The notes under the pieces were generated by a model that was not told where the DNA came from, made no database searches, and was given only the letters and a program-made list of their open reading frames with translations. A program made the translations under genes and the position numbers. 64,000 nucleotides of DNA, taken from IMG/VR virus record IMGVR_UViG_3300035698_018317, positions 161,285-225,284 of that record, one strand, 5' to 3'. Shown here in pieces: positions 4,287 through 38,012 of the stretch; position 1 is the first letter of the stretch, and the number at the start of each line of letters is the position of its first letter.

Positions 4287-6275
4287 TCAAACTAAAGTTG
4301 TAAATTCGTTTTTTCTTTCCAAGTTAATAGAATCACAATCGCCTAACGCCTCTAATAAATCACGGTCATGTGTAGTCACAAACACCTTTTTGTTCTTCGA
4401 TAACTGCATAATCATGTTGTATACGTTCTCTACACCTAGTGGGTCTATGTTCGTTGTAACTTCATCTAAAAACAAAATAGATGAAGCTGCTCCAGAATCT
4501 ATTGTCATTATGTGAGCAAATGCTTGAGACACAGCAAGGTTAAGTCGCCTTCGTTCGCCACCTGATAAATTATGGTAAACAAATGATTCGCTTTTACTCG
4601 GAACTCTGCTAATTATCTCATTAAATTCATTATCAAATTCTAATTTGATTTTTCCATCAATAAGGAATTGAAGCCAATAAGTAATACGAGAATTTAATGC
4701 TGGAATTATTCCATCAATAATAAATTTTCTTATTCCGTTATCTCCGAAAGCATTGACCCAAAAATTATAATAAGGCAAGTCTTGTTCGGTTTTTTCTAGT
4801 TCAGTTTTCTTATCTTTACATTCATTTTCCTTGTCCTCTTTTTCTTTAATAGATAATAATTTTATCTCTTTGTAAGGAGAAAGTCCATCAATTTCTTTTT
4901 TCTTTACTATTGCTTGTTTCTTAAGGCTTTCAATGTCGTTATTAAGAATCTTATCGTCTGCATCTGCATCTGGTTTATTAACTTTAGACAAACGAGACAT
5001 GTTAAAAGTGATACTGGTAATTATCTTAGAGTTATTTAAAGATTTCTTTGAGGCTAATTCAACAGCCTCATTTAATTTTTTTGTTTTTAAATTTATTGTT
5101 TCTAGAAGGGCTGATTTTTCTTTGGCAATTAATTTTTGAGCTTCTAGTTTTTCTTTCTCTTTGTCAATGATTTTTTCAGATTCTATTGTGAGATGTTCAT
5201 AATTTTCTTTTTTAACAATTCCAAGACACGTTGGGCATTTCTTACCTTTTTTATTTTCATAATCAGATATGGTCTTCTCATTTTTTCTAATTGTAGATGA
5301 GAAATCTGCCATGTTAGATTGTGCCTTATTTAAAGCAGAATCCAATTCATATTTCTTGGCAAGCTCTTCATCTAATTGCCCTTGAACCGTTTCTTTTATC
5401 TTGTTTATTTGCTCAATCTCAGATTGACGCAGAGACATCTTTTCTTCTAATTCTTTCAACTCTTCTTGTGCTTCGTTGTACTTAATAAGAGCAGCCCCAG
5501 AATTACTATTTCTGAGAGATATAGTTTTAGTTTTAATAAGATTGATTAATTCAGCAAGTTCTTCTTCTTTATTGTTTTTCCATTCTTCTTCTTGTTGTTT
5601 TATTTTCTCAATACGAGTTTCGCATGAATTTAATTGGGAAAGAAAACTGGAATATTGTTCAGAAATTAGTTTTATTTTTTCTTTGTATTTGCTCTTTATT
5701 TTCTTGGCTTTATCTGAATACTCCCGATAAGAACCTAAAGATAACAAGTTATCAATAATTTGTCTTTTCGTTGGGGTATCGCTCTCTAGGAAACACCCAC
5801 TGTTGTTATCCCTGAATATAACAGTATTTACAAACGTTTCATACGAGAGGCCGATAATGTCTTGAATCGCTTTCTGGGTATCGGTCATGCTCCCACGAGT
5901 CTTTTCATTATTTTCATCCCATATATGGTCTTTACTTTCCCACAACTTAAGCTTGTTGGGCTTTCTACTTCGAACTATTCGATAGTTATCCCATATAATT
6001 TCTACTTCTAAATCCTTACATATTGTAAGATTTATTATCTTATCATTTGTAAGTTTTTTAATAGTTTTTCCATACAAAGCATAAACAAGTATTTCAGGTA
6101 TGCTTGACTTTCCAACTCCATTTGAAGATGCGTGTCCTTCATCATCTAAAATATCTTTATTCTTACCACGAACAAGAATTATATTCCCGTATGATTTTAA
6201 ATCAATTTCGATTCCCTCTGGGCCGAAACATAAGAAATTCTTTGCCCGAATATATTGAAAGTCTAAATTCTTCAT
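4287..6275 (-). CDS. sbcC: SbcC/Rad50-like (T4 gp46-like) recombination ATPase
   Basis: Walker A NGVGKSS, long coiled coil with Zn hook CPTC, signature LSGGE, Walker B LFLDE, H-loop VTTHD. Confidence 0.93.
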   Translation of the reverse strand: MKNLDFQYIRAKNFLCFGPEGIEIDLKSYGNIILVRGKNKDILDDEGHASSNGVGKSSIPEILVYALYGKTIKKLTNDKIINLTICKDLEVEIIWDNYRIVRSRKPNKLKLWESKDHIWDENNEKTRGSMTDTQKAIQDIIGLSYETFVNTVIFRDNNSGCFLESDTPTKRQIIDNLLSLGSYREYSDKAKKIKSKYKEKIKLISEQYSSFLSQLNSCETRIEKIKQQEEEWKNNKEEELAELINLIKTKTISLRNSNSGAALIKYNEAQEELKELEEKMSLRQSEIEQINKIKETVQGQLDEELAKKYELDSALNKAQSNMADFSSTIRKNEKTISDYENKKGKKCPTCLGIVKKENYEHLTIESEKIIDKEKEKLEAQKLIAKEKSALLETINLKTKKLNEAVELASKKSLNNSKIITSITFNMSRLSKVNKPDADADDKILNNDIESLKKQAIVKKKEIDGLSPYKEIKLLSIKEKEDKENECKDKKTELEKTEQDLPYYNFWVNAFGDNGIRKFIIDGIIPALNSRITYWLQFLIDGKIKLEFDNEFNEIISRVPSKSESFVYHNLSGGERRRLNLAVSQAFAHIMTIDSGAASSILFLDEVTTNIDPLGVENVYNMIMQLSKNKKVFVTTHDRDLLEALGDCDSINLERKNEFTTLV

Positions 6276-6688
6276 TAAAAAGCCTTATCGTGTTTATAGG
6301 GTCTGGTTTTATTGTAATTATGTTTGGCTAATATCGCCTCTGGAAGATTTAATTTCTTTTGAATTGAAAAATCCATAATTCGAATAACAGCATCAGCTAG
6401 TTCTGCTTCTAAGTTGGTAAATTCTGGAATCTTATCATCTGGGGGATTGCCATGTCTTATGGCCTCTAATGCTTCGCTTAATTCTGAATGCATAAGAGCT
6501 ATTTTTGTCCCGTCATCTGGGTCATCTTCCCAAAATCCATGGTCTATTGCGGTTTCATTAGTCAACTTGGCAACGTGGGAAAAACCCTGCATGAAGAATT
6601 GCAGTTGGCTTTTTTCCCGAATATCTGCGAGTTTCATTTCATCTTCAGGAGTATTGTGATGACCACAGCTACATTTTTTATTTTTCAT
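6275..6688 (-). CDS. MazG-like nucleotide pyrophosphohydrolase
   Basis: IALMHSELSEALEA...EAELADAVIRIMD...KHNYNKTRPYKH; start placed at MKNKK. Confidence 0.8.
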   Translation of the reverse strand: MKNKKCSCGHHNTPEDEMKLADIREKSQLQFFMQGFSHVAKLTNETAIDHGFWEDDPDDGTKIALMHSELSEALEAIRHGNPPDDKIPEFTNLEAELADAVIRIMDFSIQKKLNLPEAILAKHNYNKTRPYKHDKAF

Positions 6689-10573: not shown

Positions 10574-10584
10574 GTTGTATTTTT

Positions 10585-10673
10585 GGAAAATAGGCAGATA
10601 TTGGCTTGCTGCGCTGGTTTGCTAAACCAGTTGGCCTGAAAGGGTCATGAGGGTTCGAATCCCTTGTTTTCCG
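10585..10673 (+). tRNA. trnS: tRNA-Ser(GCT)
   Basis: Acceptor GGAAAAT/GTTTTCC, anticodon arm CTGGT-TTGCTAA-ACCAG, long variable arm, TTCGAAT T-loop; CCA not encoded. Confidence 0.92.
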
Positions 10674-10676
10674 TTT

Positions 10677-10764
10677 GGAAAGTAGCCGAATATTGGTTTG
10701 TCGGGCTAGTTTCGAAAACTAGTTGGCCTTCGGGTCATAAGGGTTCGATTCCTCTTACTTTCCG
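10677..10764 (+). tRNA. trnS: tRNA-Ser(CGA)
   Basis: GGAAAGT/ACTTTCC, CTAGT-TTCGAAA-ACTAG, long variable arm. Confidence 0.92.
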
Positions 10765-10833
10765 TGGTGACGATTGCCAATGCAACGCTAGGTTGCATTA
10801 GTTTAAATAAATTTAAAAGTGAATATTGCCATC

Positions 10834-10905
10834 GGGCGGTTAACACTGTGGTCAGTGTGCTGGATTGAAGTCCCAGAAAAGTTGGTTCGATACCATCACC
10901 GCCCA
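10834..10905 (+). tRNA. atypical tRNA-Phe(GAA)-like
   Basis: GGGCGGT/ACCGCCC acceptor, D stem ACAC/GTGT, loop TTGAAGT with A31-C39 mismatch and a T-stem mismatch. Confidence 0.65.
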
Positions 10906-10923
10906 TTTTATGTACACTCCAAC

Positions 10924-10997
10924 GGTGGTTAGAGTGTGACGGTAGCACGGGTGAGCCTGAAACTCATCAAGAATGGGTTCGATTCCCATAACCACCA
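10924..10997 (+). tRNA. atypical tRNA, anticodon loop CCTGAAA (TGA in register; possibly Phe-derived)
   Basis: GGTGGTT/AACCACC, GTGAG/CTCAT anticodon stem, ATGGG-TTCGATT-CCCAT; C33 instead of U33; short variable loop, unlike Ser tRNAs. Confidence 0.6.
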
Positions 10998-11003
10998 TTA
11001 GTC

Positions 11004-11078
11004 GGAGCTTTGGTACTGGTCTGGTGACAGTGTGCGCCTGAAGAGCGTAAAAGTTCGGTTCGATTCCGAAAGGCTCCA
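11004..11078 (+). tRNA. trnF: tRNA-Phe(GAA) variant with G37
   Basis: GGAGCTT/AGGCTCC, TGCGC-CTGAAGA-GCGTA, TTCGG-TTCGATT-CCGAA. Confidence 0.75.
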
Positions 11079-11093
11079 TTTAGTTGTAAAAAC

Positions 11094-11166
11094 GCTGCGG
11101 TAGCTCAGTTGGTAGAGCACTAGACTGAAAATCTAGGTGTCGCTGGTTCGATTCCAGTCCGTAGCA
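11094..11166 (+). tRNA. trnF: tRNA-Phe(GAA), canonical
   Basis: GCTGCGG/CCGTAGC, GCTCAGTTGGTAGAGC D arm, CTAGA-CTGAAAA-TCTAG. Confidence 0.95.
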
Positions 11167-11168
11167 TT

Positions 11169-11316
11169 GGATATTCACATGGCGGAATATATTGTTTCAT
11201 TGACCCTTGTTCTTTATAGAAATGCAAATGGAACTACAAGGCACACGCAGCTTTCTTCGGGAAGTGTGACCTCCCAGCCGAGGTCTTGTCCGTTCAATTC
11301 GGACTGTGAATATCCT
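11169..11316 (+). ncRNA. 148-nt tRNA-like structured RNA
   Basis: 11-bp terminal stem GGATATTCACA/TGTGAATATCC stacked on T arm GTCCG-TTCAATT-CGGAC; internal helices CCTTGT/ACAAGG, CACAC/GTGTG with UUCG hairpin, ACCTC/GAGGT. Confidence 0.65.
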
Positions 11317-11320
11317 AAAC

Positions 11321-11402
11321 GGCAGTATTGAGCAATTGGCTGCTCCCCAGATTGTAAATCTGGCGTCGAAAGGCATTGAAGGTTCGAGTCCTTCTGCTGC
11401 CA
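11321..11402 (+). tRNA. trnY: tRNA-Tyr(GTA) copy 1
   Basis: GGCAGTA/TGCTGCC, CCAGA-TTGTAAA-TCTGG, long variable arm. Confidence 0.92.
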
Positions 11403-11405
11403 GTT

Positions 11406-11636
11406 ATGAGTAAGAAAGATGAAAATAAGCGTAGAGAATACCAAATGCAGAATTATTCCGTGTATTATTTTCCTATAACAGGAGAAGTAATGTGTTGCCC
11501 AAAAAAAAGAAGTGTATTTGGCGAGTTGCACGACCACCACTATTACATAAATTATTGTACTGATTGTGGGCAGCGAGTAAAACTTTTTGTTGCTAAAAGA
11601 AAACGTGTAGTTTGTGAACGTTGTAAAAAAGATTAG
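11406..11636 (+). CDS. small Zn-finger-like hypothetical protein within tRNA array
   Basis: ATG right after tRNA-Tyr; CTDC...CERC. Confidence 0.6.
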   Translation: MSKKDENKRREYQMQNYSVYYFPITGEVMCCPKKRSVFGELHDHHYYINYCTDCGQRVKLFVAKRKRVVCERCKKD

Positions 11637-11644
11637 TCTATTTC

Positions 11645-11726
11645 GGCAGTATTGAGCAATTGGCCGCTCAGCGGACTGTAAATCCGCCGCCTTCGGGCAT
11701 TGAAGGTTCGAGTCCTTCTGCTGCCA
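11645..11726 (+). tRNA. trnY: tRNA-Tyr(GTA) copy 2
   Basis: Same acceptor and T arms as copy 1, with GCGGA-CTGTAAA-TCCGC anticodon arm. Confidence 0.93.
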
Positions 11727-11732
11727 TTATTA

Positions 11733-11838
11733 GCCCCCGTGACGGAATTGGCAGACGTGCGAGTTTTAAGGGTTTAAGAACCCACTAAAAGAAACTCGTG
11801 TCCATACGGGCGTACAGGTTCGAGTCCTGTCGGGGGCA
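11733..11838 (+). tRNA. Leu-body tRNA with 22-nt insertion in anticodon arm (TAA if insertion is at 37/38)
   Basis: GCCCCCG/CGGGGGC, Leu-type D arm TGACGGAATTGGCAGACG, stem CGAGT/ACTCG enclosing 29 nt with an inner GGGTT/AACCC hairpin. Confidence 0.75.
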
Positions 11839-12060
11839 TTAAGATTCAAATTCTTTTTGAATCATCTCCATTACTTTGTTAAAATCTTTTTCACTAGTTG
11901 TTTTGGTTTGAACGTATTCGGCAGCTTTATCTATAGTGAGACCGCCTGTGCGAATGCTATTTACCATCTTACTAGCTAATTTATTTAAATTTAATTCACC
12001 ATAACCCCCAACAAGTGGTGGCATTAATCTTGATTCTAACCATGTGTTAAAAGTTTTCAT
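11839..12060 (-). CDS. small protein with CTS-like N-terminus (MKTFNTWLES), antisense within tRNA array
   Basis: Fills the gap between two tRNA genes exactly; shared N-terminal motif; ATAGATA upstream. Confidence 0.65.
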   Translation of the reverse strand: MKTFNTWLESRLMPPLVGGYGELNLNKLASKMVNSIRTGGLTIDKAAEYVQTKTTSEKDFNKVMEMIQKEFES

Positions 12061-12073
12061 AATGTATCTATTC

Positions 12074-12158
12074 GCCCTAGTGACGGAATTGGCAGACGTG
12101 CTGGCCTTAAAAGCCGGTGTCAATATATGGCGTGCAGGTTCGAGTCCTGTCTAGGGTA
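12074..12158 (+). tRNA. trnL: tRNA-Leu(TAA)
   Basis: GCCCTAG/CTAGGGT, CTGGC-CTTAAAA-GCCGG, long variable arm. Confidence 0.92.
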
Positions 12159-12160
12159 TT

Positions 12161-12233
12161 TTCTGGGGACGTGGTGTGCAGAATGAAGTTAGGACTACAC
12201 AAGGCTTATAGGTTCGAGTCCTATCACGGAACA
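12161..12233 (+). pseudogene. degenerate tRNA-like element
   Basis: Intact T arm ATAGG-TTCGAGT-CCTAT and imperfect acceptor TTCTGGG/CACGGAA; no recognisable D or anticodon arm. Confidence 0.45.
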
Positions 12234-12238
12234 TCTCT

Positions 12239-12326
12239 GGAAAGCAGCCGAATATTGGTTTGTCGGGCTAGTTTTGAAAACTAGTTGGCCTCCGGGTCAT
12301 AAGGGTTCGATTCCTCTTGCTTTCCT
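12239..12326 (+). tRNA. trnS: tRNA-Ser(TGA)
   Basis: GGAAAGC/GCTTTCC, CTAGT-TTTGAAA-ACTAG. Confidence 0.9.
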
Positions 12327-12329
12327 TTT

Positions 12330-12418
12330 GGATGGGAGCCGAATATTGGTTTGTCGGGCTAGTTTGGAAAACTAGTTGGCCTGAAAGGGTCATTAGGGTC
12401 CAATTCCCTACTCATCCG
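12330..12418 (+). tRNA. trnS: tRNA-Ser(GGA)
   Basis: GGATGGG/CTCATCC, CTAGT-TTGGAAA-ACTAG; T-loop variant TCCAATT. Confidence 0.85.
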
Positions 12419-12476
12419 TTCGAATAAAAATATAAAAATTATTCGAACCTTTACTATTATATAGTGGAGGTAAAAA

Positions 12477-18301: not shown

Positions 18302-18407
18302 GGCTGAATGACGGAATTGGCAGACGTGCGAGCTTTTAGGGTTTGAAAACCCATTAAAAGGTGCTCGTGTCCTTCGGGGCGTGTGGGTTCGAATCCCTCT
18401 TTGGCCA
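18302..18407 (+). tRNA. second Leu-body tRNA with 22-nt anticodon-arm insertion (TTA if insertion is at 37/38)
   Basis: GGCTGAA/TTTGGCC, same D arm, stem CGAGC/GCTCG enclosing 29 nt with an inner GGGTT/AACCC hairpin; 106 nt like the first copy. Confidence 0.72.
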
Positions 18408-18421
18408 GTAAGGAAATTGTT

Positions 18422-18880
18422 ATGTGGCGTGAAGAATACGACGAATACGATGATGATGGCTATCCTTATTATTATCATGATGGCCTTGGTTGTCGTTGTT
18501 ATAAATATGACAGACCTCCTTATAATAAAAATTATAACGTGCCGTCTCATATTCATATAATGAACAAGAATGAGGCGAAAGTAATGCGTCGTCTCAAAAA
18601 TGAAACTGGTTTATCTGAAGAGGGTATTCGAAAGATTAAGAAATATCGAATTATGCTTTCTGAAGCTCAAAAAGAAGGGCAAAAAGCCAAACGGACAAGG
18701 GTGCAAAAAGCTAGAGATGAAGTAATGAAATGCGTTTGTCGTAAGCTTAAATTAGCCAAAGAACATCCTGTTACACAGAAAGCATATCGTGAAGAATGGG
18801 AACGGCGGCGAAAGGAATATGATAATCGTCCTTGTTGTAATAGTAGTATTTATCTAGAATCACCAAAGGATGATAGATAA
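18422..18880 (+). CDS. hypothetical protein
   Basis: ATG after a GTAAGGA SD, between tRNA genes. Confidence 0.65.
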   Translation: MWREEYDEYDDDGYPYYYHDGLGCRCYKYDRPPYNKNYNVPSHIHIMNKNEAKVMRRLKNETGLSEEGIRKIKKYRIMLSEAQKEGQKAKRTRVQKARDEVMKCVCRKLKLAKEHPVTQKAYREEWERRRKEYDNRPCCNSSIYLESPKDDR

Positions 18881-18885
18881 AATCC

Positions 18886-18969
18886 AGCCTCGTGACGGAA
18901 TTGGCAGACGTTCGGGACTTAAAATCCCGTGCCCTTCGGGGCGTGTGGGTTCGAGTCCCACCGAGGCTA
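18886..18969 (+). tRNA. trnL: tRNA-Leu(TAA)
   Basis: AGCCTCG/CGAGGCT, CGGGA-CTTAAAA-TCCCG. Confidence 0.93.
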
Positions 18970-18983
18970 TTTAGAAATAATCA

Positions 18984-19067
18984 GGCCGAGTGACGGAACT
19001 GGCAGACGTGCGGGGTTCAAATTCCCGTGTCCGAAAGGGCGTGTGGGTTCGAGTCCCACCTCGGCCA
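18984..19067 (+). tRNA. trnL: tRNA-Leu(CAA)
   Basis: GGCCGAG/CTCGGCC, CGGGG-TTCAAAT-TCCCG. Confidence 0.92.
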
Positions 19068-22643: not shown

Positions 22644-22659
22644 TAAATTAATTGCTTAG

Positions 22660-22690
22660 AAAAAGGTGTCACAATTTGTGGCACCTTTTT
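22660..22690 (+). terminator. intrinsic terminator
   Basis: AAAAAGGTGTCAC-AATTT-GTGGCACCTTTTT. Confidence 0.75.
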
Positions 22691-22705
22691 CTATATTATA
22701 GTAAC

Positions 22706-24040
22706 ATGTTTATTCCAGATAAATTTCACTTCATATACCTTAATGAAGGAGCGGGAGCAAAACCGTTTAGTCTAGTTCATTATGTTTCTATTAAATCAGC
22801 AATAGAGGTCAACAATCCTGATTCTGTAACCTTATATTATTCTAAAGAGCCTGATTCTTTCTGGTGGGATAAAATCAAAGGTCAAGTAAATTTAGAAAAA
22901 GTAGTACCGCCTAATAGTGTTTTTGGTAGACCAATAACTCATGTGGCTCACAAAGCTGATGTATTAAGACTTGAAAAACTAATTAAGCATGGGGGGATTT
23001 ATTTAGATATAGATATAGTTTGTTTAAAACCATTTAAAGATTTATTGAATAACAAAGTAGTTCTTGGTAGAGAAAAAAAGCAACAGATTTGTAATGGCGT
23101 CATTATGGCCAAAAAAAACTCCGCATTTCTTAAGGAATGGTATCAACTTTACAGGAGTTTTGATGACACACAATGGTCAACACATTCAGGTTATCTTTCA
23201 ACTCGATTAGCTCAATTCAACCCCTCAGTACGGTTAGAACCACCAGAGTCATTCTTTATTCCAAGTTATCGTAGACTTCCTGCCTTATTCAAAAGAAATC
23301 AAAACTTTCCACAAGCATACTGTTATCATCTATGGGAAAAATTGTCTTGGAATTTCATAAAACAATTAACAGTCTCAAAGATTAGAAAAGAAGATACAAC
23401 ATTTAATGTGGTGGCAAGAAAATATTTATCTGATATAGTAATTCCACCATCGGAGGATAAGTCTAAGCATAAACATAAAGTAATATGGAGAAAATATCCT
23501 ATATTTATACATACGCCGAAAACAGCAGGCACTTCTATGGCGAAGATTTTGAAGAATAATAAGATTCGTCATTTCTGGCACAAGCCTGCTAAAGAATTAT
23601 TAAGAGGCAATCCTTTTTCTTTCGCATTCGTAAGAAATCCTTACGATAGATTTGTAAGTGCTTATCAATTTGTAAAAGATGGAATAGTTGACCCTGTACA
23701 GAATAAAAGTGTTTTTAAAATCATAAAGAAATGTGGTGATTTTGAAACGTTCTGTATGGATTTTAAAAATTATCCAGTTTGTACAAACCATGTAATTTTT
23801 GAACCACAATACAAATTCCTATGTGATAAAGAAAAAATTATAGTTGATTTTATAGGCCGATATGAGAATCTACATGAAGATTGGTTTAAGTTGCTTAAAA
23901 AGCTTAAAATAAAAGATACTCCACTTCCTATGTTAAGAAAGAGTAAAAGAACCTCAGATTATATGTCGTACTATACAGAAGATGCCAAACAAGCTATAGG
24001 TGAATATTATAAAAAGGATTTCGAAATATTTGGATATTAA
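22706..24040 (+). CDS. DXD glycosyltransferase (GT32-like) fused to sulfotransferase family 2 domain
   Basis: ADVLRL..L...GGIYLDID; C-terminal IFIHTPKTAGTS, FVRNPYDRFVSAY, DFIGRYENL. Confidence 0.85.
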   Translation: MFIPDKFHFIYLNEGAGAKPFSLVHYVSIKSAIEVNNPDSVTLYYSKEPDSFWWDKIKGQVNLEKVVPPNSVFGRPITHVAHKADVLRLEKLIKHGGIYLDIDIVCLKPFKDLLNNKVVLGREKKQQICNGVIMAKKNSAFLKEWYQLYRSFDDTQWSTHSGYLSTRLAQFNPSVRLEPPESFFIPSYRRLPALFKRNQNFPQAYCYHLWEKLSWNFIKQLTVSKIRKEDTTFNVVARKYLSDIVIPPSEDKSKHKHKVIWRKYPIFIHTPKTAGTSMAKILKNNKIRHFWHKPAKELLRGNPFSFAFVRNPYDRFVSAYQFVKDGIVDPVQNKSVFKIIKKCGDFETFCMDFKNYPVCTNHVIFEPQYKFLCDKEKIIVDFIGRYENLHEDWFKLLKKLKIKDTPLPMLRKSKRTSDYMSYYTEDAKQAIGEYYKKDFEIFGY

Positions 24041-24701
24041 AATAATACATCTTCTTTCGTATCCTAAAGAGGAAAGAGAAATTAATTCTATTTCCTCAAT
24101 AAGTAAATTGGATATTCCTTATACTCAACACGTAAACACTGTGTTCACAGGTAAACCTCCTGAGAGTAAATGGCCGTGTGAAAATTCCATAAGGGAGACA
24201 TCATACGGATGTTACGATTCTCATAAAAAAGCTCTTGGTGAATTTAATACAGATTATCTTTTAGTCTGTGAGTGTGATTGTATTATCTCAATTCCTCCTA
24301 GCCAATTTCTTGAAATATTACCATTTTATATCAAAGATATGGAAGAGAATAATATTGCTTGTTTAGGGATTGGCTCTTTTTGTAATACGATAAAAAAAGA
24401 AACTAAAGAATTGTATATTTGTGAGAAAATGGCCTGTACTCAATGTTTGCTATACTCGTCTGAATATAAAGAAATGATAAACCAAGATGAAGATTGGCAA
24501 CCATATGACAGTTGGTTGAGTCGAATTTTAGGAGAAAAAGGAAAATTAGCTGTTGTAAAACAACGTACAACGCATCAACATATTGGTCGTTCATTGATAG
24601 ATGGATTAGATAAAAGAATGGCGAAAAGAGTAGATTCTAATGGCACAGAAGATATATTTACCATATGGTCAGATGGCATGATATACAATGCTACTTTTTA
24701 A
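24000..24701 (+). CDS. glycosyltransferase (GT25-like)
   Basis: YGCYDSH..AL, LVCECDC, D.WL; alternative TTG start at 24030. Confidence 0.6.
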   Translation: MNIIKRISKYLDIKIIHLLSYPKEEREINSISSISKLDIPYTQHVNTVFTGKPPESKWPCENSIRETSYGCYDSHKKALGEFNTDYLLVCECDCIISIPPSQFLEILPFYIKDMEENNIACLGIGSFCNTIKKETKELYICEKMACTQCLLYSSEYKEMINQDEDWQPYDSWLSRILGEKGKLAVVKQRTTHQHIGRSLIDGLDKRMAKRVDSNGTEDIFTIWSDGMIYNATF

Positions 24702-24708
24702 GTTTCAT

Positions 24709-25854
24709 TTATTGTATTGTAATGGGCAGTTTTTTTGATTGGTAAAAAGGAATGGGAGGTGTTCTACGGTATTCAAACCTATTCTGTTGGCTTTTTCTTA
24801 CACACATATCAAATAACTCCAAGTCGATATCTTGTAAGACAGCACAATATTTTTTTGTTCCCTTTGGGCATTTATCTAAAGGAAGTGGAGAAACGATACC
24901 ACATGGCTTATGTTGACAAAATCCACTACCAAACATGAAGGTGGGAATTTTATATTTATGAGCGATATATTTAGGAGGAAGAGTGGACATAATACCTACA
25001 GAAGGAATTCTAAATGCTTCTCCAAGATGTACTCCAGCAGAATCAGGAGACACAATAAATTCTGCATTAAACGCTAAAGAGAATACGTCTATTGCTTCTG
25101 TTTTTCCAGAAAGATTTTTTACCCCTTCTATTTCTTCCAGTCTATCTAAACAATTATAACGTCCGTAAACATAAACCTTTACACCATATTGTTTTAATAT
25201 ATGTTTAATTAATTTTATGTTTGTTTTAGGAGGAAGATTTTTGCAATTCCCACTTGAATGCCACTGTAGTAGGACATATTTATCGTTTTTATCTATACCA
25301 AGTCTTTCGTAATAATCTTTATTTGGATATAATATTTCTTCATTTGTGAAAGCCCCAAAATCAGGAAGACCTTCATATTCCATACCCACAGTATTATACA
25401 GACGTTGTATAATACTTTGATTATCTACCCATGACCTATCCGCTCTGTCTTTTTCCGTCCAAAAAAACATAGCAGGTATTTTGTGTGTAAATGTGTCAAA
25501 TTCTTCTTTTGTGATATATGGTTCTCTAAGATTTATACTTGAAGGAAGAAAATTAGAATAGAATTTATTTATAGGAGGAGTAGAACACACATCTAATCTA
25601 CATCTCATTCTACTTTTAATCCTATATATATCTCTTAAATAAGTGATAAGCCAGATTGAATCACCCATGCCAAGAGTGGCATCGCCTTGCATCATATACA
25701 CAGCCGATTCTTCTGGGCTTATACGGTTTCCGCTGTATACTTCGATATCATAATCAGGAGCTACTTCACTAACTGCGTTTTGGGGTAATGAGCGAGGCTT
25801 ACCCCAAGTTACGTATTTTTTTTTGTCTTGTTTTCTTGTCCATGTCCAAAACAT
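24709..25854 (-). CDS. glycosyltransferase family 9 (heptosyltransferase-like)
   Basis: LGMGDSIW...; IVSPDSAGVHLGEAFRIPSVGIM. Confidence 0.82.
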   Translation of the reverse strand: MFWTWTRKQDKKKYVTWGKPRSLPQNAVSEVAPDYDIEVYSGNRISPEESAVYMMQGDATLGMGDSIWLITYLRDIYRIKSRMRCRLDVCSTPPINKFYSNFLPSSINLREPYITKEEFDTFTHKIPAMFFWTEKDRADRSWVDNQSIIQRLYNTVGMEYEGLPDFGAFTNEEILYPNKDYYERLGIDKNDKYVLLQWHSSGNCKNLPPKTNIKLIKHILKQYGVKVYVYGRYNCLDRLEEIEGVKNLSGKTEAIDVFSLAFNAEFIVSPDSAGVHLGEAFRIPSVGIMSTLPPKYIAHKYKIPTFMFGSGFCQHKPCGIVSPLPLDKCPKGTKKYCAVLQDIDLELFDMCVRKSQQNRFEYRRTPPIPFYQSKKLPITIQ

Positions 25855-25857
25855 AAA

Positions 25858-26862
25858 TTACTTTGCTTTCTTTTTAGAAGTTTTCTTTTTGGGAGTTTTC
25901 TTTTTATTTTCTAAGACATTATCGCTTATACACTTCTCTTTTGCAACAGATTCCTCTATACTATTAGAAAGTTCATCAATAATTTCGTTCTCAATTTCAT
26001 TTTCATCAGGTCGTGTTGGTGCATCCGCTGTGAAAGAACGTGCAGTAAATGAAATTTCTGGATAGTAAGCTTCGTAATACCATTTATTTCGATTCACAAT
26101 GGAGGTTATAATGCGTGGAGAAAGTTTTCTGAGTTCTGGCTTCTCCAATTTAGATTTGATTTTATGCATGTACTTCATACGATAGAATGAGTCGGCTTCT
26201 GGAATCGTTGTTTGTTCAATGTTATCAAAGTCTATCTTTTGAGTTTTAACTCCTATCCATGTGAACAACTCATCCATAGTTTTTTGCGGGTCGCTTAGGA
26301 AATCTTCATATCTCCAAAAATATATGTTTCGCATTATATCAGGAATATCACCAAGATTATAAATGGCCTTTAATGGACCACCTATAACTCCATTATCATC
26401 AAACATTGCCCCAGCCCTCTTATCTACTATATGCTGTTCACAATGGTCTGGGAAATCTAGAAGAAGTGTTTCTTTATGTCTTTTTTCTATACTAGAAAAT
26501 ACACCTCTTAAATCTCTGAGACATACTATCATTTTAAAATTAGGATAAAGGTGTTGTAATGTGGGAGCACTATGACACCATCCTCTATTTTTATCTATAG
26601 TAATAGGAGTATTTGTATCTGAAGACCATTCTCCCATAAACGCTTTAAGAGACCGCTTTAGACGTTTGTAGACAACTTCAAAATTAGAATCTAATTGGGT
26701 TAAAAGAAAAGGGTCATCACTCCAAATTCTTCTTAGTTGATTAATTAATCCACATAAAGGAGAAGATGGAGTAGATGAAATTTCCGAATGTTTATCCAGT
26801 AAATTGCAAAGTAGTGTTGAGCCGCTTCGTGGAAGGCCCGATAAATATATTATTTCTTTCAT
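25858..26862 (-). CDS. sulfotransferase (family 3-like)
   Basis: 5'-PSB motif GLPRSGSTLL; 3'-PB CLRDLRGVFSS; WRYEDF. Confidence 0.85.
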   Translation of the reverse strand: MKEIIYLSGLPRSGSTLLCNLLDKHSEISSTPSSPLCGLINQLRRIWSDDPFLLTQLDSNFEVVYKRLKRSLKAFMGEWSSDTNTPITIDKNRGWCHSAPTLQHLYPNFKMIVCLRDLRGVFSSIEKRHKETLLLDFPDHCEQHIVDKRAGAMFDDNGVIGGPLKAIYNLGDIPDIMRNIYFWRYEDFLSDPQKTMDELFTWIGVKTQKIDFDNIEQTTIPEADSFYRMKYMHKIKSKLEKPELRKLSPRIITSIVNRNKWYYEAYYPEISFTARSFTADAPTRPDENEIENEIIDELSNSIEESVAKEKCISDNVLENKKKTPKKKTSKKKAK

Positions 26863-26905
26863 AAAAAAAACCTCATTGTAATTTAGTTACTAATGAGGTT
26901 TTTTT
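26863..26905. terminator. bidirectional terminator-like hairpin
   Basis: A8-CCTCATT...AATGAGG-T7. Confidence 0.7.
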
Positions 26906-26920
26906 ATTATCTTTTTATTT

Positions 26921-27922
26921 TTAAGAGACACTCATTACGATTCCATTGACTACTGTGATGGAGGTAACCGCTCCGTTGAAATAACCATACCCACTTGTGC
27001 CAGACGCCGCAAAGAAGGTCGCAGCTACAGTTCCATTGTTAGTAGCATCGACGGTTCCTCCATAGGATTGCATAATCATATTTCCTTGTGCCGCTATACT
27101 TCCAGCAGACGTACCATAAGCCATGAAAACGGTGCCCGCCCCGACATCGCAATTACCGTATTGTGAATAAAAACCGCCAGCAGTAAAATCACTGTTACAT
27201 GAACCATAGGACATAGTCATACTACCATTAGCAGTAAAATCACCGGATGATGAACCTTGGCCCATATAAACCGAGCTTGCATATGCATAACCCGCATACA
27301 TCGAGCCGCAAGTGAACACGTTATTGCATGAACCATCGCTCATATACACAGTGCCAGAGTTACAATATATATTGTTGGTAGCATAGATGTCGGCCCCAGT
27401 TATCGCACCGTAAGCCGAAAAACTGGTCCCCGCTGCGTTAGCGTAAATTGTGCCTTCAGTATACATAATTCCATCAGCACGAACATCTTGGCATTGTAAC
27501 GTACCTAACCCAGCACCAACCCCGTATTCGCCAAGTTGTAAGGAATTAGACGAGTTGTTTACACCTTGACCAATTTGCCAACAGTTAGCTTGAGCAGCAG
27601 TCGCACCATCACCAAAAGCAAAAGAATTAGCCCCCACTGCTGTTGTGTTACCTCCTAGAGCAAAAGAAGCGTTCCCTAATGCTGTAGCTGAGCTTCCTTG
27701 AGCAAAAGACGGTCCCCCTGATGCTGTAGTTGAGCTTCCTTGAGCAAAAGAACTTGGCCCTGATGCTGTAACGCTGCTTCCTTGAGCAAAAGAGCCAATG
27801 ACTCCCGAAGCAGTAACAGCACTTCCTTGAGCGAAGGACTGAGTATCGGCACTGTTTTCACTTGCAATTTTGTCTAACGTAACAAAATCAATATTATTTT
27901 CTACATACGCATTATCAGGCAT
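26921..27922 (-). CDS. adhesin/fibre-like protein with YadA-head-like repeats
   Basis: Repeated SFAQGSS.TASG units followed by a Gly/Ser/Tyr-rich beta repeat; TAAATA upstream. Confidence 0.75.
   Translation of the reverse strand: MPDNAYVENNIDFVTLDKIASENSADTQSFAQGSAVTASGVIGSFAQGSSVTASGPSSFAQGSSTTASGGPSFAQGSSATALGNASFALGGNTTAVGANSFAFGDGATAAQANCWQIGQGVNNSSNSLQLGEYGVGAGLGTLQCQDVRADGIMYTEGTIYANAAGTSFSAYGAITGADIYATNNIYCNSGTVYMSDGSCNNVFTCGSMYAGYAYASSVYMGQGSSSGDFTANGSMTMSYGSCNSDFTAGGFYSQYGNCDVGAGTVFMAYGTSAGSIAAQGNMIMQSYGGTVDATNNGTVAATFFAASGTSGYGYFNGAVTSITVVNGIVMSVS
27650..27850. repeat. ~42-bp coding tandem repeats (SFAQGS units)
   Basis: cttccttgagc(a/g)aa repeated four times. Confidence 0.75.
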
Positions 27923-28632: not shown

Positions 28633-29631
28633 TTAAGCTACTTGGGTTTTTTCTGGGTTTCCAAAAAACCCAATATCCCAATAAATAGCATGAAGAATAT
28701 CTAGAAGGGTGAAATCTTTAAAGCAATCAATAAATACTTTAGAGTTTTTAGCGAATTTAATAGAGAATTGATGATTTACAATAATGGGGATATGAACTAA
28801 TTCATTCATAGGTGTCATTGTAACACTGTGTTGTTCTGTGTTGGGTATTTCCGTCGAGGAGACCTCTCCTACACCGAAAAATTTACTTAAGATATAGAAT
28901 TTTTTATTATCAAGTTCTCCCTGTGAACTTACTTGTAGATATTCGATATCAGTAGAAAGTTTTTTAGGTCTTATTTTGGCTGCTTTATGAAAAGCTGAAA
29001 TATCGCAAGATGAATATTTACTCATGAAATCTTTTAGTATTTCATTACTGTTGACAAATCTGAAGATATCTCCCAGAGTGGTGCCTCCAATAATTTTACA
29101 TTTGGACATCAGGCACTTAATCACATCGTCAGATGGAACCATATGGTATTTTTCATCTATAAAACCATTTCTTGTAAGATAGCCACAAGAAAAATCAGAT
29201 TTAGCGTCGGCAAACAAAATATCAATAATTTCAAGGAGGGTCCATCTCATAGAAGCAGGAAGTGGAGTTTTATCTTTGTTTTTTATTTTTATTTCATTTT
29301 TTAATATAAGTGGTTTATCTGTTAGGTCTTTTGAAGTGGAGGAAGCGGGGCTTATATTAAGATTGTCATGTTTTAAAGTTATATTTCTTGAAATAAGAAT
29401 AGGTGGTAAAATAAACAGATGGTGTGGGTAGCAGGCTTCTACAAAACACTTAAGAGAATCATTTTTTGAAATGATTCTCAATAAGTCTTCCCATGTTACC
29501 CCACTGTCAATCGTACAAGATGCACGAAGATAGGGCCACACATCTTCTATTTTTGTTCGTAAAAAGCTATTAGTTCCTTGAATCGGTTTCTTACAACGAA
29601 TATCTGTCTTTGTTATTTCAATGTGATTCAT
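28633..29631 (-). CDS. hypothetical protein with internal domain duplication
   Basis: VTWEDLLRIISKNDSLKCF vs TTLGDIFRFVNSNEILKDF; WTLLEII vs FTLLDIL. Confidence 0.7.
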   Translation of the reverse strand: MNHIEITKTDIRCKKPIQGTNSFLRTKIEDVWPYLRASCTIDSGVTWEDLLRIISKNDSLKCFVEACYPHHLFILPPILISRNITLKHDNLNISPASSTSKDLTDKPLILKNEIKIKNKDKTPLPASMRWTLLEIIDILFADAKSDFSCGYLTRNGFIDEKYHMVPSDDVIKCLMSKCKIIGGTTLGDIFRFVNSNEILKDFMSKYSSCDISAFHKAAKIRPKKLSTDIEYLQVSSQGELDNKKFYILSKFFGVGEVSSTEIPNTEQHSVTMTPMNELVHIPIIVNHQFSIKFAKNSKVFIDCFKDFTLLDILHAIYWDIGFFGNPEKTQVA

Positions 29632-29858
29632 AGTATTCCAGTAAGCGGGATTCTGTTTTATGACTGCATTTATCTCACCTTACGGTGGCGGCTCATGCCG
29701 CTGCCACTACCCGACCATTATAGTGCTGCTCACCCACTAGGTCTGTACGTGTTGCATTCTCGGTGGTGCAAATGGACATAAGCCCTCCCACCTTAAGCAG
29801 AAATGTCCTGACTTTCCTCTGTTTTAAAAATCAAAACAGCGCAGTCTCAGAACACTAT
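29630..29858 (-). ncRNA. rnpB: RNase P RNA (compact, reduced specificity domain)
   Basis: Minus strand: P1 ATAGTGTTCT/GGAATACTAT, P2 GACTGC/GCAGTC, P3 CTGTTTT/AAAACAG, CR-I GAGGAAAGTC, GGGTAG, P18 CACC-GTAA-GGTG, CR-IV AGATAAAT, CR-V AACAGAATCCCGCTTA. Confidence 0.88.
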
Positions 29859-29861
29859 AAA

Positions 29862-30299
29862 TCACATTCTAATTTCTTTAACAATATCAGTAACTATTTT
29901 GCCATCAGCTTTTTTGCCAGTACTTTTTAGAGCCTTCATAGCAAGTCCTGTTGCTTGACCATCTGAGCGGCAATCTTTTATATCTGTCATATGTGGATAA
30001 AGAAAGTGTATTATTTCTTCTTTTTCCATCATAGCTGGAAGGAAGGTAGTGAGAATTTCATTTTCTCTTTTTATAGCGTCTAGTTTCTCTTGAGCATGAG
30101 TATGTTCGATATTAGCTTCATTTAAAACGATTATTTTCCGAATAATTCTTTGTTCGTCTTCTTCGGAAATCCCATTTTTAGCCCTACTCTGAGCCGCCTG
30201 TATTTCACTGGCTGCATATTTCAGGACATCCCTAGCAAACGTATCTCCCGACTTCATTGCTTGGGTAATTTGTTCTCGTATTGTATTAGATAAACTCAT
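29862..30299 (-). CDS. GatB/YqeY domain protein
   Basis: AMKSGD..ARDVL...I..A...E..IL..FLP.MM...G.AMK...GKADGK.V..IVK. Confidence 0.82.
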   Translation of the reverse strand: MSLSNTIREQITQAMKSGDTFARDVLKYAASEIQAAQSRAKNGISEEDEQRIIRKIIVLNEANIEHTHAQEKLDAIKRENEILTTFLPAMMEKEEIIHFLYPHMTDIKDCRSDGQATGLAMKALKSTGKKADGKIVTDIVKEIRM

Positions 30300-37266: not shown

Positions 37267-37662
37267 ATGAAAACATTTACAAAATTTATATTAGAACAAG
37301 ACGAGCAAATTGCTATTGATGAATTCCCGTTTGAACTGGAAGATATTATATCTTGTGAAACACAGCATTTAGGCCCATGTACTACTCCAGAAGCAATTGC
37401 CCATATAAAACTGGCACAAAAGACAGCTAAAATTTTAGGAGTTGTCAAAGCTTTTGGATACGGTAGTGATTTTAAAAAATCTACTCCTGATGATTTCATT
37501 TATGAGGTGACAGTGGAATATATGGAAAAGGCTCTTGACGAAATTCCAAATTCAAGATTAATACAAAGACCATATTTTGCCAATCCGGGTGAGCGTACTT
37601 ATAAAAACAGAATGTTAATTGGTGTTAATCAAGAAGGTAAATCCTCAGTGTTTATGAATTAA
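37267..37662 (+). CDS. hypothetical protein with CTS-like N-terminus (MKTFTKFILE)
   Basis: Shared motif; ATAAATA at 37253-59. Confidence 0.72.
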   Translation: MKTFTKFILEQDEQIAIDEFPFELEDIISCETQHLGPCTTPEAIAHIKLAQKTAKILGVVKAFGYGSDFKKSTPDDFIYEVTVEYMEKALDEIPNSRLIQRPYFANPGERTYKNRMLIGVNQEGKSSVFMN

Positions 37663-38012
37663 ACTTTGCTTCTGCCAATTATTTCTACTTGAGAGGGATT
37701 AAAGACAAAACCATCGAAGTGGTCCCCTCTAGGAAGAATCGCTCCATCATAACCTTGTTGTTCAAGTTGGTCGAGTACAAGTTGATTATATTCTTTCCAA
37801 CCAGCAGGATTTTGTAAATTAACTTTTAGTTCAAGAATATATCCTGACCCTTGTGCCCCTGCTTCTCCAGATTCAATAGATGTTTTATCAGATGTAAACC
37901 AAATTAAACCTTGAGTTGCTTTTTTTAAATTAAATGTCTTAAACCTTTTATCTGTACCGTGATATACGGTCTGTGTGATGACAGATGATTCAAGGTATTG
38001 TTTGAACTCCAT
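37659..38012 (-). CDS. ADP-ribosyltransferase-like protein with CTS-like N-terminus (MEFKQYLE)
   Basis: VYHGT..F..F...G.IWFTSD...V.L.NP...L...GYDG...VF.P.Q ART-type pattern. Confidence 0.7.
   Translation of the reverse strand: MEFKQYLESSVITQTVYHGTDKRFKTFNLKKATQGLIWFTSDKTSIESGEAGAQGSGYILELKVNLQNPAGWKEYNQLVLDQLEQQGYDGAILPRGDHFDGFVFNPSQVEIIGRSKV

Follow-up and report, generated by a model that had tools for sequence, protein, structure and literature searches.

Does a jumbo phage carry its own RNase P RNA, and could one of only 229 nt still work as a ribozyme? RNase P RNA is seen as a housekeeping ribozyme common to all cells. Its C-domain holds the active site and the RnpA binding surface, and its S-domain binds the T stem-loop. 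The question is raised by a 229-nt interval between two protein genes in the window, the 64-kb stretch of DNA analysed here, which is part of the 225-kb contig IMGVR_UViG_3300035698_018317. The window is phage DNA, encoding RNR, SbcC, DnaB, DNA polymerase, UvsX and SSB; its protein matches are all distant, the best being DnaB, with 38% identity to the uncultured 595-kb phage LR756511. Covariance-model alignment, covariation in 20 homologues, conservation above the flanking genes in sister phages and the presence of many homologues inside phage tRNA arrays support identification of the RNA as a phage-borne, compact, type A-derived RNase P RNA without CR-II/CR-III and P10-P14.

A permissive Infernal scan of positions 29300-30200 gives a match to the bacterial type A model RF00010 (RNaseP_bact_a), covering model positions 1-367 and window positions 29626-29858 on the minus strand (62.9 bits, E 1.2e-18). 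Homology to the model is shown, with a score under the curated cutoff. The gathering threshold of RF00010 is 100 bits, and for this reason the RNA was missed by a scan of the whole window at Rfam gathering thresholds, which returned tRNAs only and no RNase P RNA match. The low score is explained by the replacement of about 140 S-domain consensus positions (P7 interior to P14) by 38 nt. Within the RNase P clan the highest score goes to bacterial type A, and not to type T, with an overlapping lower-scoring clan match suppressed. The fold beats those of all 200 shuffles (z = -3.0), and G+C is 46%, compared with about 35-36% in the surroundings. The C-domain is of type A, with P6 and P15-P17 present, and CR-I (GAGGAAAGUC), CR-IV (AGAUAAAUG) and CR-V (ACAGAAUCCCGCUUA) keep their order and are invariant or nearly so in 20 homologues. 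CR-II/CR-III are absent, and the RF00010 criterion of P8-P14 plus CR-II/CR-III, the T-loop binding site, is not met, as P7 and one hairpin are found instead.

The original prediction, made from sequence alone, had placed the type A catalytic-domain hallmarks in order on the minus strand, and every motif that it listed is found at the coordinates it gave (the blocks GAGGAAAGUC, GGGUAG, CACC-GUAA-GGUG, AGAUAAAUG and AACAGAAUCCCGCUUA). Also upheld are the bulged U and single A-C mismatch in P4, the length of about 229 nt with no CR-II/CR-III or P12-P14, and the lack of slack between the YqeY stop codon and an ATG that overlaps P1 (a 3-nt gap and a two-base overlap, with YqeY confirmed by Pfam). 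The claim of a single P18 with a GTAA tetraloop held only in part: two hairpins are present at the P18 site, and GUAA is not conserved in sister phages (AUAAA in L234). The P6 pseudoknot, P15-P16-P17, the P7 stem and one small hairpin had been missed. The suggested similarity to archaeal type T RNAs holds as an analogy only and not as a relationship, the loss of the S-domain being a resemblance in form.

Features of the RNA and its surroundings, in window coordinates; alignment remarks refer to the 20-sequence alignment described in the text.
Feature	Position	Strand	Remarks
tRNA array: Ser, Phe, Tyr, Leu and atypical tRNA-like genes	10584..12419	plus	presumed substrates
Second tRNA cluster: Leu genes, one with an anticodon-loop insert	18302..19067	plus	presumed substrates
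332-aa gene (orf332), function unknown	28633..29631	minus	start MNHIEITK conserved in relatives
Compact RNase P RNA gene, 229 nt	29630..29858	minus	P1 5' end to P1 3' end
P1	AUAGUGUUCUG 29858-29848 pairs with CUGGAAUACUAU 29641-29630	minus	11 bp including 3 G-U; double changes at all 11 pairs
P2	GACUGC 29841..29846 pairs with GCAGUC 29662-29667	minus	6/6 pairs covary, 95.8% of cells paired
P3 hairpin, 7 bp	29819..29839	minus	6/7 pairs covary; two C-G/G-C to A-U double changes in L234
CR-I GAGGAAAGUCAGGAC, including P4 5' strand and bulged U	29805..29819	minus	invariant
P6 pseudoknot, 5' strand CUGCU+UA	29794..29800, pairs with L17 loop (UG)AGCAG 29726-29732	minus	94% paired
S-domain remnant	29761..29793	minus	P7 stem GGUGG/CCACC around GAG, one 4-bp hairpin, UUUGCA
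J5/15 CAA, P15, P16, P17, L15 loop with GGU	29705..29754	minus	GCAA and GGU invariant
Two hairpins at P18 site: GCGGC-AUGA-GCCGC, CACC-GUAA-GGUG	29676..29701	minus	recur with unrelated stem sequences in 7 relatives
CR-IV AGAUAAAUG, P2 3' strand, J2/4, CR-V ACAGAAUCCCGCUUA (P4 3' strand)	29642..29675	minus	motif inspection, RF00010 alignment, 20-sequence alignment
YqeY-domain gene	29862..30299	minus	Pfam PF09424, 52.4 bits, cutoff 27

In the window RNA, P4 is formed by AAG(U)CAGGA with UCCCGCUU, giving 8 pairs, the bulged U and one A.C opposition. P5 is CAUU/AAUG, P15 is CAC/GUG, P16 is GACC/GGUC, and L15 reads GGGUA. The relatives that carry both P18-site hairpins are L121, L068, L090, L077, L058, L095 and L064; the loops are not conserved, and a GNRA-receptor contact is therefore unlikely.

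Homologues were retrieved by a pattern consisting of CR-I, a gap and CR-V. The covariation alignment (A2) comprised the window RNA and its 19 most similar homologues, and the 73 pairs tested were those proposed from the window sequence. Across the 20 sequences, 88.3% of pair cells are standard, compared with 33-43% after the partners are shifted 1-3 columns, and 56 of the 73 pairs change on both sides. The covariation score of 0.48 was not reached by any of 500 shuffles, and the shifted controls score no higher than 0.12. The structure is thereby shown, with P2, P6, P16 and P4 94-100% paired. P4 has 99.4% of its cells paired, and two of its pairs covary between A-U and G-C; the A.C of the window is its sole non-pair, where 14 sequences have A-U and 5 have G-C. 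P16 is 100% paired with covariation at 4/4 pairs, and P15, P17 and P7 also covary. The complementary sequences of P6 differ wholly in other subfamilies (GAGCAAU/AUUGCUC, GAAUGA/UCAUUC, AAAUGG/CCAUUU, GAAGC/GCUUC and AGAGU/ACUCU), as seen in L015, L031, L003, L008 and L023. Residues involved in catalysis and substrate binding are invariant in the alignment (CR-I, GCAA of J5/15, GGU of L15, and AG..AAU of CR-IV), while the invariance of CR-V was built in by the search pattern. A junction motif, GGGAG...ACCAC, is found again in several subfamilies.

Sister contigs L234-L239, from several samples, share with the window the order DEAD-box helicase, DUF4326, transglutaminase-like protein, basic protein, YqeY, 229-nt gap and orf332. 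The RNA fills the gap in these contigs (RF00010 scores of 58.8-61.7 bits), and 7 sister contigs all show the same spacing from the two genes (3 nt and -2 nt). Nucleotide identity of the RNA to the window is 91.3% in L234 and 88.7% in L239, compared with 81-83% for YqeY, 70-72% for orf332 and 54-57% for the basic protein in the same two contigs. Pairing is kept by 7 of the 8 substitutions in paired columns of L234, including the two double changes in P3, and in L239 a P6 pair is changed from C-G to U-A. Purifying selection on the RNA in the window phage lineage is shown. The A.C opposition of P4 is retained in 6 of 7 sister sequences (it is A-U in L239), so it is a tolerated state and no sequencing error.

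The RNA is missing from a relative, L034, in which YqeY is 77% identical at the protein level. At its locus, L034 has AGAGGAAAGU and GAAAUACUAU within a short stretch, and an HNH endonuclease gene comes next. This stretch reads as a deletion scar; the RNA gene is therefore ancestral at the locus and can be lost, so there are at least some settings in which it is not required. In L160 and L166, GC-rich phages that are more distant, a slightly larger RNase P-like RNA is again followed by an orf332 homologue.

A strict form of the pattern, with a CR-I to CR-V distance of 135-165 nt, returned about 110 distinct sequences, the window RNA among them, from viral contigs (including IMGVR_UViG_3300035698_018317), 86 metagenome stretches and 27 genome contigs. 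The genome contigs are mostly MAGs (Gemmataceae, Patescibacteria and Elusimicrobia), and two are isolates. The RNA of the isolate Pseudomonas sp. (L148) scores above the Rfam threshold and falls outside the phage class. Within the phage class, all members tested are below the threshold (28-83 bits) with full model coverage. The compact members keep P6 and have an S-domain cut to P7 plus one or two hairpins, an architecture to which the window RNA conforms, and in 78 of 106 compact homologues there is no room for P18. GenBank phages (50,697 records) contain no DNA similar to the locus or the RNA, and no annotated relative. Full-length RNase P RNAs of phage contigs match only unannotated metagenomic 'Bacteriophage sp.' or mislabelled bacterial records in GenBank. 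The window RNA thus appears to be part of a broad, apparently unannotated class, and no published family was found for compact RNase P-like RNAs of phages and tRNA arrays.

The wider family is shown to be associated with tRNA arrays. tRNA genes are present at about 60% of the loci, nearly all of them on the strand of the RNA, and longer-gap patterns returned 25 and 60 further viral contigs, several of them 300-500 kb long and most with the RNA inside tRNA arrays. Among 180 distinct RNAs, a tRNA ends just before P1 in 48 and a tRNA starts 10-30 nt past GCUUA in 45; in L031 the order is tRNA-RNA-tRNA with overlaps of 1-2 nt. The subfamily of the window RNA, a minority one, retains the two P18-site hairpins and is located between protein genes, and, like its closest relatives, the window RNA lies outside any same-strand tRNA array. 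Protein genes also flank the RNA in L090, L160 and L166; those of L090 (Dam methylase, RNase H, DnaJ and GIY-YIG endonuclease) have none in common with the window. GOLLD RNA and tmRNA are present in some of the same arrays.

In the window, the YqeY stop codon (29864-29862) is 3 nt before P1, and the orf332 ATG (29631-29629) overlaps the final two bases of the P1 3' strand. This start is considered genuine because MN[HR]IEITK is conserved in relatives, and since it lies inside P1, excision of the RNA and translation of orf332 would conflict on one transcript. Promoter-like sites around the RNA are not above shuffled expectation, and a terminator scan of the same region found five terminator-like sites, none flanking the RNA on its own strand.

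Neither neighbour is supported as a partner of the RNA. GatB has a tRNA-binding tail domain, which gave rise to the idea that YqeY is a trans-acting stand-in for the missing S-domain. However, tblastn finds YqeY beside the RNA only in the window phage clade, within which the adjacency is conserved, and at no other locus, and L034 retains YqeY without the RNA. A role of orf332 as cofactor has no link in its favour beyond synteny. The orf332 family is small, with only eight homologues in 5.8 billion clusters; in L240 a homologue follows an RlaP gene with no RNA there. Its AlphaFold model is confident (pLDDT 85, pTM 0.86), with no PDB fold match at E <= 0.001; its only matches are uncharacterised viral proteins, and there is none in Pfam or PHROG.

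The window has at least 15 tRNA or tRNA-like genes, among them tRNA-Phe at 11094-11166 and a Ser-Ser tandem at 10584-10764. Unlike many of its homologues, the RNA is separated from the two tRNA clusters by 10-18 kb and is encoded on the other strand. CCA is encoded by none of the 11 ARAGORN tRNAs of the window; in other arrays the count is ambiguous owing to ARAGORN end-calling. RnpA was not found in the visible 64 kb of the 225-kb phage (Pfam on about 55 ORFs plus an RNR-motif scan), nor in about 1.6 Mb of homologue flanks, which were covered by the motif scan only.

The reading that is likely to be correct is that the 229-nt RNA is a working S-domain-less RNase P ribozyme of a jumbo phage, using host RnpA to mature phage tRNAs. 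Its expression, catalysis, RnpA partner and substrates are inferred. The RNA folds into a complete type A catalytic domain (P1-P5, the P4 pseudoknot with bulged U, the P6 pseudoknot, P15-P17, J5/15, J18/2 and J2/4), in which GGU of L15 would bind the tRNA 3' end, and the specificity domain, normally the T-loop reader, is shrunk to the P7 stem and one hairpin. Transcription would probably occur within the minus-strand run YqeY-RNA-orf332. Host RnpA is the probable partner, the RnpA binding surface lying wholly in the catalytic domain, and the holoenzyme would strip 5' leaders from the densely packed pre-tRNAs of the phage, with substrates positioned via acceptor stem, -1 nucleotide, 3' end and leader and not via the T-loop.

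This reading is favoured because the phage RNAs keep what deletion experiments show to be necessary (P6) and tend to drop what is not (P18 and the S-domain). Against it are the RF00010 score below the curated threshold, the failure to detect RnpA in the visible 64 kb, the distance of 10-18 kb to tRNA clusters on the other strand, the A.C opposition in P4, the loss of the RNA in the related L034, the burial of the orf332 start codon in P1, and the retention of the CCA-binding GGU although the tRNA genes of the window encode no CCA. The original prediction was that the phage has its own ribozyme for tRNA 5' maturation, possibly serving atypical tRNAs. The identity of the RNA is supported, its activity and its need for host RnpA remain inferences, and the service to atypical tRNAs has circumstantial support only: odd tRNA-like genes are present, with T-arms that look canonical.

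Other explanations for the locus can be put forward. The RNA may be an RnpA sponge or decoy, itself non-cleaving, whose catalytic domain titrates host RnpA off the host RNase P and so throttles host tRNA maturation. The entire RnpA-binding region is kept while the substrate-measuring S-domain is gone, no phage RnpA was found in the visible window, and camelpox virus provides a precedent of an RNase P-like RNA without detectable activity (PMC3001073). However, positions that bind substrate and not protein are invariant (L15 GGU, the J5/15 A and the P4 bulged U), homologues lie inside tRNA arrays whose products also need RNase P, and the phage's own tRNAs would be blocked too, making a decoy unlikely. 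We also doubt that the RNA is an active ribozyme with mainly non-tRNA substrates, that is, phage mRNAs or structured RNAs, including its own polycistronic transcript, once it is free of T-loop recognition. The position of the RNA between two protein genes, at 3 nt and -2 nt and with a start codon within P1, speaks for this alternative; the same arrangement is invariant in 7 sister contigs, the L090, L160 and L166 RNAs are likewise flanked by protein genes, and removal of the S-domain relaxes substrate requirements (PMC5839562). Yet no candidate substrate has been identified, and the strongest association across the family is with same-strand tRNAs.

The remaining alternative, that the RNA is a non-functional relic (a fragment of host rnpB in decay, the remnant of an attachment site, or a chimeric assembly), is contradicted by the pattern of conservation and is the least probable of the three. 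The sub-threshold score, the missing S-domain, the A.C in P4 and the loss of the RNA in L034 could be read in its favour. However, at least 7 independent contigs, obtained from different samples, have the same RNA in the same phage synteny, which also contradicts the chimeric assembly of host DNA that the original prediction had named among its refutations. In addition, the RNA is conserved above the flanking coding DNA, with compensatory substitutions; both ends of the molecule are present and the reduction is internal, unlike in attachment-site duplications; and there is no similar DNA in the 50,697 GenBank phage records.

If the working-ribozyme reading is true, a catalytic RNA for tRNA 5' maturation joins the translation functions carried by phages, and nature itself provides a test at this locus of what portion of the ribozyme is required in vivo and of how substrates are chosen without T-loop recognition. 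It may also help to explain the processing of very dense tRNA arrays with 0-2 nt spacers. A bolder reading, which the present evidence leaves evenly balanced between right and wrong, is that bacterial-type RNase P ribozymes form a widespread class, so far undescribed, in phages and on mobile islands of tRNA arrays. Their sizes would run from about 210 nt to full length, and the smallest would lack the S-domain, and usually P18, but keep P6, the same minimal set as that defined by deletion experiments. Array-embedded copies, abutting tRNAs on both sides, would be freed by tRNA processing, including their own cleavage at the downstream tRNA, and tRNA maturation would be independent of the host RNA subunit. 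The Rfam gathering threshold conceals the compact class from routine annotation. These questions are directly testable, as one compact member is found in the cultivable Achromobacter anxifer LMG 26857 (L145), where the RNA occupies 6076-6299 within an array that has at least 32 tRNAs.

No description of a phage-encoded RNase P RNA was found in the open-access literature searched, and a survey of huge phages does not mention RNase P; an account in a subscription journal is not excluded. Other supernumerary or viral RNase P-like RNAs have been reported, and they are the closest precedents. Camelpox virus has an RNase P-like RNA that shows no pre-tRNA processing activity in vitro (PMC3001073); it is virus-encoded like the window RNA, but the virus is eukaryotic and the RNA has no link to viral tRNA genes. 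Extra rnpB-like copies with an altered S-domain are found in Mycobacterium austroafricanum and M. sp. YC-RL4 (PMC9569102). These resemble the phage RNA in being supernumerary, apparently horizontally acquired, altered in the specificity domain and conserved in core residues. However, they are a side observation in bacterial chromosomes and are not described as compact, phage-borne or array-embedded.

The closest likeness in the catalytic domain is to bacterial type A RNase P RNA (RF00010; E. coli M1 RNA), with which the phage RNA shares the whole domain: P1-P5, the P4 pseudoknot, P6, P15-P17, the L15 GGU and CR-I/IV/V. It differs in its length of 229 nt, compared with about 350-400, in the absence of P8-P14 and CR-II/CR-III, in having two small hairpins rather than a P18 docking on P8, in being encoded between protein genes, and in scoring below the curated threshold. 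To our knowledge, no natural S-domain-less RNase P RNAs have been known other than those of archaeal type T (Thermoproteaceae; RF02357; PMC3579882), which demonstrate that natural loss of the S-domain is compatible with function (PMC3579882). Type T RNAs and the phage RNA both have a conserved C-domain, a degenerate S-domain and a predicted P6, and P18 is absent from type T as it is from most of the compact phage relatives. Type T RNAs, however, are archaeal type A-like, with a 3-bp P2, a shortened P15, a 2-nt P5/P15 linker and archaeal proteins (PMC3579882), whereas the phage RNA is of bacterial type, with a 6-bp P2 and a 3-nt CAA linker, and does not meet the type T criterion for the C-domain. 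Given these differences, the reduction of the S-domain is convergent and not inherited. The same architecture has been made by deletion in the laboratory: the E. coli C-domain alone (Eco CP RPR) cleaves substrates with and without C5, about 120-fold more slowly than the full RNA (PMC5839562), and it needs a P6-like pairing, while P18 is irrelevant once the S-domain is gone (PMC5839562). Unlike this laboratory construct, the phage RNA is a product of natural selection, and it still has the P7 stem, a single hairpin and the conserved junction motif.

The tRNAs of the window are dominated by types with a long variable arm (5 Ser, 2 Tyr and 3 Leu), and within two Ser-Ser pairs the genes are separated by a spacer of just 2 nt. 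None of the 11 tRNAs called by ARAGORN has an encoded CCA. Three tandem genes resembling tRNA-Phe(GAA) are degenerate and lie directly upstream of a canonical tRNA-Phe. The anticodon stem is mismatched in one of the three, and C occupies position 33 in one; two were not called by ARAGORN, and the other was labelled 'Ser(tga)'.

Two further genes, each of 106 nt, are tRNA-Leu-like and match the Rfam tRNA model (41.8 and 37.2 bits), with no call for either by ARAGORN. In both, the anticodon loop is interrupted by an insert of about 22 nt that forms a hairpin, GGGUUUAAGAACCC in one versus GGGUUUGAAAACCC in the other. A group I intron is ruled out by size, as about 22 nt is too small. The inserts may be small introns, or the genes may encode tRNAs that are deliberately disabled or act as decoys; each remains only a possibility.

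Features of the window and of related contigs (coordinates of L-numbered contigs are their own).
Feature	Location	Strand	Evidence
tRNA set	window 10584-12419 and 18886-19067	+	
Degenerate tRNA-Phe(GAA)-like genes in tandem (3)	window 10834-11078	+	
Canonical tRNA-Phe	window 11094-11166		
tRNA-Leu-like genes with insert (2)	window 11733-11838, 18302-18407	+	Rfam tRNA model matches
HNH/HTH gene	window 12477-13037		
Gene cluster beside RNA operon	window 22652-27922		
332-aa two-repeat protein gene	window 28633-29631	-	AlphaFold model
Small ORF	window 37659-38012	-	ART-PolyVal, 39.4 bits
HNH endonuclease gene	L034 3501-4091		
GOLLD RNAs and one tmRNA	L015 2438-2853 and 6827-7195, L023 5642-6103		GOLLD, 199.7 and 178.9 bits
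Achromobacter compact RNA	L145 6076-6299		82.7 bits
Pseudomonas RNase P RNA	L148 1169-1417		187 bits

In L034, a related phage without the RNase P RNA, an HNH endonuclease gene is found at the place held by the RNA in the window, and another HNH/HTH gene immediately follows the tRNA array of the window. The gain and loss of these RNA genes may be driven by homing endonucleases.

The 332-aa protein encoded downstream of the RNA has only 8 known homologues. AlphaFold models it with confidence (pLDDT 85, pTM 0.86), and a PDB fold search with the model gave no match. Shorter homologues follow the RNase P-like RNA in the more distant phages L160 and L166, and an RlaP nucleotidyltransferase gene in contig L240. 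In the cluster beside the RNA operon, two genes encode sulfotransferases, one a family-9 glycosyltransferase and one a protein whose repeats resemble those of the YadA head, which suggests functions in glycan or surface modification. Elsewhere, a small ORF matches ART-PolyVal, the ADP-ribosyltransferase domain of polyvalent proteins.

In contigs L015 and L023, GOLLD RNAs and a tmRNA share phage tRNA arrays with compact RNase P-like RNAs. Compact RNase P-like RNAs recur in Gemmataceae MAGs (L124, L127, L130, L138, L141 and L142), often within tRNA arrays. In Achromobacter anxifer LMG 26857, a bacterium that can be cultured, a compact RNA of 224 nt is embedded in a tRNA array with at least 32 genes in 8 kb, and the nearest tRNAs lie 12 and 15 nt from the two ends of the RNA. 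Patescibacteria MAGs (L123, L135 and L137) also have compact RNAs, with no tRNAs nearby, and here the compact RNA could possibly be the sole RNase P RNA of the cell. In Pseudomonas sp. NPDC096917, an RNase P RNA of 249 nt scores above threshold, and its 3' sequence is identical to that in metagenome contig L078; the typical pseudomonad RNase P RNA gene is about 100 nt longer.
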